A stretch of 64,000 bases of DNA from Epithemia pelagica (Eukaryota > Protista > Bacillariophyta). Shown here one piece after another: positions 50,115 to 51,445 of this stretch; within the stretch, counting starts at the first letter, position 1; every line of letters starts with the position of its first letter. The stretch covers positions 124,001 through 188,000 of the forward strand of contig OX337241.1 in assembly GCA_946965045.2 (NCBI GenBank), read 5' to 3'. The translations under genes and the position numbers were made by a program. The notes under the pieces are model-generated. The model saw only the letters and a list, made by a program, of their open reading frames with translations. It was not told the origin of the DNA and did not search any database.

Positions 50115-51445
50115 TTAGGCGACGACAGAAGGAGCAGTCATGGCCACGGGCAAGACTTCGCCACTGGCCAAATCCAAGGGAAAGTTGTGGGCATTGCGTT
50201 CGTGCATGACTTCCATACCCAAATCGGCGCGGTTGATAATGTCGGCCCAGGTGTTGATGACACGGCCCTGAGAGTCAATGACGGCTTGGTTAAAGTTGAA
50301 ACCGTTCAAGTTAAAGGCCATGGTGGACACACCCATGGCAGTCAACCAGATACCAATCACGGGCCAGGCGGCCAAGAAAAAGTGCAAGGCACGCGAGTTG
50401 TTGAAGGAAGCGTATTAGAAGATGAGACGACCAAAGTATCCGTGAGCGGCAACAATGTTGTAGGTTTCTTCTTCTTGACCAAACTTGTAACCGTAGTTGG
50501 TGGATTCGCTTTCAGTGGTTTCGCGAATCAAGGAGGAAGTGACCAAGGAACCGTGCATGGCCGAAAAAAGGGATCCGCCAAAGACACCGGCAACACCAGC
50601 CATGTGGAAGGGGTGCATCAAAATGTTGTGTTCGGCTTGGAAGACCAACATAAAGTTAAAGGTTCCGGAGATACCAAGGGGCATACCATCAGAGAAGGAT
50701 CCTTGTCCAATGGGGTAGTTGAGGAACACAGCAGTGGCGGCGGCTACGGGGGCCGAAAAGGCGGTAAAGATCCAAGGACGCATACCCAAACGGTAGGACA
50801 GTTCCCATTCACGGCCCATGTAGGCGGCCACACCAGTCAAAAAGTGCAAGACAATCAATTGGTATTCACCACCATTGTACAACCATTCATCCACCGAAGC
50901 GGCTTCCCAGATGGGGTACAAGTGCATGCCAATGGCGTTGGAGGAGGGGACAACGGCACCCGAAATAATGTTGTTACCGTACAACAAAGATCCAGCAACG
51001 GGTTCACGGATTCCATCAATATCGACTGTGGTAAAGCAACAATGTTAGTCCACTCATTTCTATTGTGGTATAATCTTTTCAACCAAGGAGCGCACGTACC
51101 AGGAGGGGCGGCGATGAAAGCCGTGATAAAACAAGTGGTGGCCGCAAGGAGAGTAGGGAACATGAGGGTTCCAAACCATCCAATGTAGAGACGGTTTTCC
51201 GTGCTGGTGATCCAGTTGCAGAACTTTTCCCAGACGGTCGCGGTGTTGCGCTTAGCCACACTGTTACTGGTATCGAGCGAGGCGGCGTTCAAGGCAAAGT
51301 CAGAAGTAGCTTCCTCGACATTGGAAGGGACAAAAGCAATCGCCGAAGAAGAGGAACGGGCCTGGGTGTTCAAGGGAGTGGGGGCCGTGAAGGCGTCAGC
51401 TTGAGAAGCCAAGAGGGTAGCAACGACGGCAAGGGCAAACTTCAT
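50115..51445 (-). CDS. psbA: Nucleus-encoded, plastid-targeted photosystem II D1 (exons 51100-51445 and 50115-51025; 418-codon precursor); in-frame TAA at D1 Q261 (50415-50417)
   Basis: Spliced translation is colinear with full-length D1 ([13 protein letters not shown]...AAPP|VDIDGIREP...[20 protein letters not shown]). It is preceded by [23 protein letters not shown]61, Y161, D170, E189, H190, H198, H215, S264, H272, H332, E333, D342 and A344 are all present. Confidence 0.97.
51026..51099 (-). other. 74-bp spliceosomal intron in psbA (phase 1, inside the Val58 codon)
   Basis: Donor G|GTACGT, branch-point GACTAAC (51044-51050) and acceptor CCACAG|TC. Splicing restores AAPP-V-DIDG. Confidence 0.95.

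Follow-up and report, generated by a model that had tools for sequence, protein, structure and literature searches.

Two explanations for the retention of genes in organelles, a hydrophobic barrier to import and local redox control, both use D1, the five-helix core protein of the photosystem II (PSII) reaction centre, as their prime example, and its gene, psbA, is to our knowledge the textbook case of a gene that never moved to the nucleus. Here, we examine a psbA gene on a nuclear chromosome of the diatom Epithemia pelagica, in a stretch of 64,000 nucleotides that we call the window (GenBank assembly GCA_946965045.2, contig OX337241.1, positions 124,001 to 188,000 of the forward strand; positions below are those of the window). 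The gene is a member of an old, selectively maintained family of nuclear D1 genes in raphid pennate diatoms, whose signatures are threonine at positions 35 and 50 and threonine or asparagine at position 160, next to the redox-active Tyr-Z.

Among membrane proteins encoded by relocated genes, import of nuclear ATP9 depends on a first helix of lowered hydrophobicity, and the first three helices of nuclear ATP6, a five-helix protein, are less hydrophobic (PMC3420929); allotopic expression of Cox2 is decided by residues within the membrane (PMC6741066). Nuclear D1 resembles relocated legume cox2, yeast Cox2-W56R, Podospora ATP9 and algal ATP6 in carrying a few within-membrane replacements by less hydrophobic residues in its first helices, and it resembles five-helix ATP6 in that the first three helices are affected. 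In contrast, the affected helix of cox2, ATP9 and ATP6 has a measurably lower hydrophobicity, and experiments showed that import is affected, whereas in nuclear D1 a calculated drop is confined to helix C, with no net drop of helix A relative to the nearest plastid D1s. The routes differ as well, since the cox2, ATP9 and ATP6 products pass the translocases of the outer and inner mitochondrial membranes (TOM/TIM), whereas nuclear D1 would enter a complex plastid via the endoplasmic reticulum (ER) plus four membranes.

A diatom case is Psb28 of Thalassiosira pseudonana, described as a gene in the course of endosymbiotic transfer, found in both plastid and nucleus, with a bipartite presequence on the nuclear copy (PMC2950852). 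It shares with nuclear D1 that a diatom PSII gene is present in both genomes and that its nuclear copy bears a bipartite presequence. Psb28, however, is a small PSII-associated protein without membrane helices, whereas D1 is the five-helix core of the reaction centre. Cyanobacteria carry several D1 genes per genome that differ at few residues, and atypical D1 forms lack ligands of the Mn cluster; unlike these atypical forms, nuclear D1 keeps all ligands, and 35, 50 and 160 are not known to be among the sites that separate cyanobacterial isoforms (e.g., 130). Engineered nuclear-encoded D1 in crop plants has also been mentioned (PMC11355022). It shares with the diatom protein a nuclear gene and plastid targeting, whereas the diatom family is natural, old and marked by signature substitutions. 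The engineered crop protein is reportedly an unmodified plastid D1 with a simple transit peptide that crosses a two-membrane envelope.

The closest protein of all is diatom plastid D1, for which we used a plastid reference (L004) and the PSII structures 8IWH, 7VD5, 6J3Y, 8J5K and 6JLU. L004 is a 360-residue D1 whose gene is flanked by ccs1 and psb28 on a contig of 76 kb that also holds secA, groEL and dnaK nearby, i.e., a diatom plastid genome; it comes from the sequence cluster nearest to the nuclear family. No named plastid D1 of the Rhopalodiales turned up among the clusters looked up. The window copy shares 93% amino acid identity with diatom plastid D1 over residues 14-344, along with the five helices, the cofactor ligands and the diatom-type C-terminal extension. 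It differs in its presequence of about 58 residues, its intron, its GC content at third codon positions (GC3, 0.63 vs 0.25 in the plastid psbA of L004), the residues T35, T50 and N160 together with T145 and E111, and its location on a nuclear chromosome. The gene is laid out as follows, with D1 numbering taken as precursor position minus 58.

51445-50115, minus strand: complete psbA (D1) gene, 418 codons.
51100..51445, minus strand: exon 1, encoding the presequence and D1 residues 1-57, including helix A with T35 and T50 (TIGR01151 positions 4-57).
51272..51445, minus strand: predicted bipartite plastid presequence of about 58 residues, read from the translation.
51026..51099, minus strand: predicted spliceosomal intron of 74 nt, GT..AG, phase 1 within codon Val58.
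50115..51025, minus strand: exon 2, encoding D1 residues 58-360 and the stop codon, with helices B-E.
50415..50417, minus strand: in-frame TAA in place of D1 Gln261.

Three colinear matches to the psbA profile TIGR01151 (positions 4-57, 59-260 and 262-359; 87.7, 442.2 and 197.1 bits) give a rough sum of 727 bits, above the cut-off of 596, and the window copy also matches Pfam PF00124 (Photo_RC; E = 4e-64). Exon 2 holds all residues of the Mn/Ca, Fe, P680 and QB sites as well as the C-terminal extension past Ala344. The presequence is predicted to target the protein to the plastid: a signal peptide ending in ...ASQADA is followed by phenylalanine at +1 (FTAP) and then by a Ser/Thr-rich part that resembles a transit peptide, a call made by eye against the ASAFAP-type motif of diatom plastid presequences (PMC4329603). 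The genes neighboring D1 in the window, which encode leucine-rich repeat (LRR) and PUB-domain proteins, are eukaryotic. A recent nuclear insert of plastid DNA is ruled out by the intron, the presequence, the GC3 and a DNA identity to plastid psbA of only 76%.

Metatranscriptome contigs have zero depth across the predicted intron, but exon 1 is barely covered by them either. The only join reported, of 51023 to 51170 in one of these contigs (X4), was considered as splice evidence and rejected; it lies off the predicted intron, skips 146 bases, ends in GA..GT and has a shorter side of 23 letters at 90% likeness, and the contig is probably foreign. On the opposite strand, a Gly/Val/His-rich open reading frame (ORF) of 376 residues (50058-51188, plus strand) runs opposite nearly all of psbA and most probably reflects codon bias on the sense strand rather than being a gene.

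To place the window copy, homologues were searched with exon 2 as seed and then with an environmental homologue (P0006), yielding a nuclear-type set of 42 sequences from Epithemia, Nitzschia, Pseudo-nitzschia, Amphora and metagenomes, which we compared with 168 other D1s. The homologues are D1 proteins of 403-457 residues whose N-terminal extensions, where the N-termini were inspected, open with a signal peptide ending in ...A|F. Named members come from Epithemia clementina (at least six copies), Nitzschia inconspicua, transcripts of Pseudo-nitzschia australis and Amphora coffeiformis, and a metagenome-assembled genome of Bacillariaceae; many further members lie on environmental contigs. In a tree built without the six alignment columns discussed below, the nuclear-type sequences cluster (Shimodaira-Hasegawa-like approximate likelihood ratio test, SH-aLRT, 89) and adjoin the diatom plastid D1s. 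Intron content varies within the family: the window copy has one intron; another locus (L002) has four (4982-5046, 5254-5325, 5837-5925 and 6029-6119), the first at the site and phase of the window's intron; and a third (L001), which lies beside DHHC and ankyrin genes, has none across that site in the stretch 3-962. A further sequence from another organism (P0432) implies the same intron site as the window. We show that the family derives from diatom plastid psbA and that it has since acquired introns, the codon usage of the nucleus and a presequence made of signal and transit parts.

The protein is under tight purifying selection, with a pairwise ratio of nonsynonymous to synonymous substitution rates (dN/dS) of 0.05-0.07 at dS 0.8-1.3 between the window copy and two environmental nuclear genes. 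Orthologue transcripts are present in MMETSP (P0147, P0161 and P0169), and marine metatranscriptome contigs are 95-99% identical to the window gene, the 3' untranslated region included. A survey of diatom plastomes found psbA in all of them (PMC12412971), so that the nuclear genes exist in addition to a plastid one. In public sequence collections they carry no annotation more specific than psbA or hypothetical protein, and no description of a natural nuclear psbA was found in the open-access literature (subscription journals fall outside this coverage).

The window copy is 98% identical to six Epithemia clementina proteins (P0146, P0148, P0149, P0158, P0166 and P0168). Two of the genes encoding this group share a 1.18-Mb contig and three share a 0.70-Mb contig, so nuclear psbA may have been amplified in tandem in that species. 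Two sequence variants at 50478-50619 in sequencing runs X1 and X2 of the window's own organism suggest that it, too, holds more than one D1 copy or allele.

Judged by profile and ligands, the predicted protein is a D1 of the standard, water-oxidizing type. Y161, D170, E189, H190, H198, H215, H272, H332, E333, H337, D342 and A344 are all found in the window copy and in 41 or 42 of the 42 nuclear-type sequences, and H118, E130, D61, N298 and other residues that we checked are likewise conserved in all or nearly all of them. This set comprises Tyr-Z, His190, the Mn4Ca ligands, the P680 ligand His198, the Fe ligands His215 and His272, and residues of the QB site. An atypical or "rogue" D1 is ruled out, as neither the Mn-cluster ligands nor other catalytic residues have been lost. 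With all ligands in place, catalysis should be standard and any functional change subtle.

An earlier, sequence-only reading of this locus had singled out six residues in or near helices A-C as polar departures from the D1 consensus. All six are encoded where it placed them, with 50718-51169 marking the outer limits of the N160 and T35 codons, and the consensus it gave (V/C35, P111, V145, V/I160, etc.) holds across the 168 non-nuclear D1s. The codons and the residues found at each position are listed here, together with the codon of Tyr-Z.

51169-51167, minus strand: codon ACC, T35, helix A; nuclear-type T in 41 of 41, other D1s V103, C22, T8 (T in 8/146).
51124-51122, minus strand: codon ACG, T50, helix A; nuclear-type T37, M4, A1 (n = 42), other D1s I78, L34, V31, T4 (T in 4/161).
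50867-50865, minus strand: codon GAA, E111, lumenal start of helix B; nuclear-type E24, P18, other D1s P142, T16, E8 (E in 8/168).
50837-50835, minus strand: codon ACT, T121, helix B; nuclear-type L19, T14, I8, other D1s I128, L26, T6.
50765-50763, minus strand: codon ACC, T145, helix C; nuclear-type V24, T13 (T in 13/42), other D1s V164, L3, I1 (T in 0/168).
50720-50718, minus strand: codon AAC, N160, adjoining Tyr-Z; nuclear-type T32, N10 (polar in 42/42), other D1s V128, I40 (polar in 0/168).
50717-50715, minus strand: codon TAC, Tyr-Z 161.

Three of these positions, T35, T50 and T/N160, are signatures of the family, T145 and E111 are lineage-restricted additions, and T121 is ordinary variation inherited from plastid-type D1. 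Two of the six residues are not special to the nuclear gene: T121 is found in the nearest plastid D1s (P0154 and L004, the latter a confirmed diatom plastid sequence) and E111 in 8 of 168 other D1s, whereas T35, T50 and polar 160 are nearly absent from plastid and cyanobacterial D1. L004 has C35, I50, V145 and V160 but shares T121. The result at position 160 extends to an independent sample of 88 representatives of 50%-identity clusters (I52, V30, L1, F1, T4), in which the residue is non-polar in 84 of 84 non-nuclear representatives and the four with T160 are all nuclear-type fragments, one with a presequence and one with the same intron site. Under the non-nuclear frequencies, the joint probability of T35, T50 and a polar 160 is about 8e-6, a figure that treats the sites as independent and takes no account of phylogeny. 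Randomness of the substitutions is contradicted by the presence of T35, T50 and T/N160 in all or nearly all 42 nuclear-type D1s at a dN/dS of 0.05-0.07.

We show that C or V35 to T, I50 to T and V160 to T arose on the stem of the family, that these sites were then kept polar, and that N160 appeared later in an Epithemia-like lineage that includes the window. The changes at 35 and 160 require two nucleotide changes each, and Val or Ile to Thr is a near-isosteric addition of a hydroxyl. Constraint shifted at the same sites. Column entropy falls from 1.47 bits in plastid D1 to 0 in nuclear D1 at position 35 and from 2.07 to 0.61 bits at position 50, although few helix A sites vary as much as these two in plastid D1; at position 145 the shift is reversed (0.18 to 1.53). 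Since positions 35 and 50 accept any aliphatic residue in plastid D1 and nearly only threonine in nuclear D1, a new constraint has been acquired. Positions 35, 43, 46 and 50 lie on one face of the helix, and the face that holds 35 and 50 is its most variable.

The most likely source of this new constraint, to which we assign a probability of about 0.42, would be the biogenesis route of a nuclear-encoded D1, with the signature residues as site-specific adaptations to it. We favor this reading because the only known difference between the two classes of D1 is the site of synthesis, and hence the route to the thylakoid. The lower hydrophobicity of helix C, the polarity of helix A relative to D1s at large and the ATP9, ATP6 and Cox2 precedents also speak for it. 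A diatom D1 made in the cytosol would have to pass the Sec61 channel of the ER and three further envelope membranes without arrest, and its thylakoid insertion would be post-translational instead of co-translational. Near-isosteric replacements of Val or Ile by Thr near the ends of helices A and C could weaken local stop-transfer or anchor signals, or could alternatively aid chaperoned transit; packing would be preserved either way. Such a mechanism would involve no general fall in hydrophobicity; T145 and E111 are later additions in some lineages and T121 is an inherited residue. A more specific version holds that T35, T50 and T/N160, a few near-isosteric Thr/Asn changes at lipid-facing sites, are the minimal natural solution for an importable D1, able to cross the ER and four plastid membranes and to assemble post-translationally, and that N160 additionally alters the environment of Tyr-Z in the Epithemia lineage; we consider it somewhat unlikely in this full form.

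Several results weigh against adaptation to the route. The three signature changes fall on one stem branch and are statistically a single evolutionary event. A few plastid or cyanobacterial D1s have T35 and a few have T50, so both residues are compatible with an organelle-encoded D1, and M50 or A50 in five nuclear D1s makes Thr50 dispensable. Continuing polar-ward drift inside the nuclear clade was also considered and rejected: parsimony over helices A-C counts 30 polar-ward against 23 hydrophobic-ward changes inside the clade and 93 against 108 outside it, which is not significant (Fisher P = 0.22). For hydrophobicity, we scored helices roughly, with plain Hessa 2005 sums without position-dependent terms and with the Wimley-White and Kyte-Doolittle scales as checks. 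Over its best-scoring 19 residues, helix A of nuclear D1 reaches 0.71 kcal/mol, compared with 0.72 in diatom plastid D1 and -0.27 in other D1s. There is no net drop because A43, T46 and F48 offset T35 and T50; relative to L004, C35T and I50T are countered by T43A, S46T and Y48F, and the hydroxyl count of the helix stays the same. Helix B shows no clear drop either, the window copy being slightly more hydrophobic than L004 by per-residue differences. Finally, the helices of diatom plastid D1 have a median at or above about 0 on the simple scale, and hydrophobicity may never have been an import barrier for D1.

The sequence-only reading had proposed a lowered hydrophobicity of the transmembrane helices for import, and this finds partial support, in helix C but not in helices A and B. 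By a fixed segment of helix A, nuclear D1s do rank within the most polar 2% of all D1s (median 1.76 vs -0.54), and the nearest plastid D1s span the family's helix B values; a general fall across helices A-C was rejected, as for A and B it holds only against the whole D1 collection and not against diatom plastid D1. Helix C is the sole helix to become less hydrophobic (family median 2.41 vs 1.90 in diatom plastid D1, +0.5 kcal/mol). In the window copy, T145 and N160 together bring it to 4.77 (about +2.9), a value that neither the 35 diatom plastid D1s (maximum 2.14) nor the 124 other D1s of that set (maximum 3.21) reach. Helix D is identical to that of diatom plastid D1s and helix E lies within the plastid range, which, with the ligands intact in the window copy, agrees with the earlier reading that helices D and E and the cofactor ligands look unchanged.

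The same observations could be read as the mark of a functional isoform, in which T/N160 tunes Tyr-Z or the donor side, T35 and T50 alter the pocket of the peripheral carotenoid/ChlZ side pathway, and the product serves a stress- or repair-adapted PSII. We judge this unlikely, though by no means negligible. Position 160 is the most exclusive site (polar in 0/168 other D1s and 0/84 non-nuclear cluster representatives), stands immediately before Tyr-Z, and switched once more, from T to N, on two or more occasions within the clade. The invariance of Thr35 hints at a specific contact rather than at any polar residue on a tolerant site, the missing net drop in helix A that weakens a transport explanation leaves room for a functional one, and cyanobacteria, as is generally known, do use D1 isoforms that differ at few residues. 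However, the known first- and second-sphere residues of the donor side and E130 are unchanged, and since residue i-1 of a helix is rotated by about 100 degrees from residue i, the side chain at 160 need not touch the Tyr-Z ring. Helix A residues 35-50 are only presumed to line the carotenoid pocket, and no report on residues 35, 50, 145 or 160 was found in the open-access literature (subscription journals fall outside this coverage). Historical accident, in which drift or hitchhiking fixed the changes just after transfer, while the gene was redundant with plastid psbA, and epistasis then locked them in with no specific role, appears distinctly unlikely. It would fit the placement of all three changes on a single stem branch, the offsetting changes within one helix that hold net hydrophobicity constant, as in compensated drift, the relaxed constraint at 145 in the nuclear clade (entropy 0.18 to 1.53), and the lack of a directional trend within the clade; the other stem changes named as epistatic partners are A43, T46, F48, T155, N19 and M91. 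Yet a step from C or V to Thr, as at 35 and at 160, takes two nucleotide changes, all three substitutions run in the same direction from hydrophobic to hydroxyl, and a dN/dS of 0.05-0.07 indicates long, tight selection. That sites varying freely in plastid D1 turned near-invariant is poorly predicted by drift plus epistasis.

Two further explanations would remove the link with nuclear residence or with a working protein. That the residues are lineage-specific plastid variation, inherited from the plastid D1 of this diatom group, is favored by T121 in the nearest plastid D1s (P0154 and L004) and by E111 in 8 of 168 other D1s, but L004 has C35, I50, P111, V145 and V160, the aligned D1 chains of the solved diatom PSII structures 8IWH and 7VD5 have P111, L121, V145 and V160, and a polar residue at 160 occurs in no plastid-type sequence examined, making this account very improbable. 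Pseudogene decay, or a recent insert of plastid DNA, would have the polar residues be random damage in a dead copy; it can draw on the in-frame TAA at Gln261 and is barely credible. Intact orthologues and paralogues carry the same residues, differences from sister copies are synonymous except for the stop, where contigs read CAA, and the intron, the presequence, the GC3 of 0.63 and the 76% DNA identity to plastid psbA speak against an insert. For the residues themselves, decay is refuted. Adaptation to the nuclear biogenesis route is the reading that we favor among these.

A natural and conserved nuclear D1 family challenges both of the retention explanations that lean on D1. The protein change needed appears to be very small, namely three signature residues with no general loss of hydrophobicity and no change of ligands, and this speaks against hydrophobicity as a strong barrier for D1 in diatoms. 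If the signature residues do confer importability, the question of why psbA stays in the plastid would become a revertant experiment, and the family would serve as a natural model for a nuclear D1 in other algae and in plants. In metagenomes and metatranscriptomes, in which psbA is commonly used as a marker gene, the two kinds of D1 can also be told apart by a simple sequence marker, T or N before Tyr-Z together with T35 in the nuclear kind.

The window copy itself departs from its relatives at codon 261, where the TAA interrupts a reading frame that is intact in the orthologues. Contigs assembled from two sequencing runs of this organism read CAA here, as do those of two marine metatranscriptomes, and the window's T is found in none of them. 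Among the 19 listed differences between the window and those contigs in mature D1 (residue 20 onward), all are synonymous third-position changes except TAA/CAA. Either the assembly is wrong at the TAA or one paralogue has very recently acquired a null allele, and the window allele may yield no full-length protein. An alternative genetic code with TAA for Gln, considered because the stop sits at a Gln codon and the gene itself ends in TAA, is ruled out by contigs that read CAA and orthologues that use CAA or CAG for Gln.

Other features of the window lie outside the gene. A long simple repeat of the GGC/GGT type occupies about 52980-53240, just upstream of the D1 gene region, and its ORFs encode poly-Gly/Cys on the plus strand and Ser/Thr/Ala-rich sequence on the minus strand. 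Downstream of the gene, a tandem duplication of about 60 nt at about 49210-49460 produces a repeated peptide in three overlapping ORFs (e.g., ...YLEGHCEYLGYHIASYGQ twice). Five long ORFs of 820-1254 residues, at 4884-7994, 9482-12172, 17866-20328, 31154-34918 and 36731-40063, have no Pfam match at E <= 1e-5.

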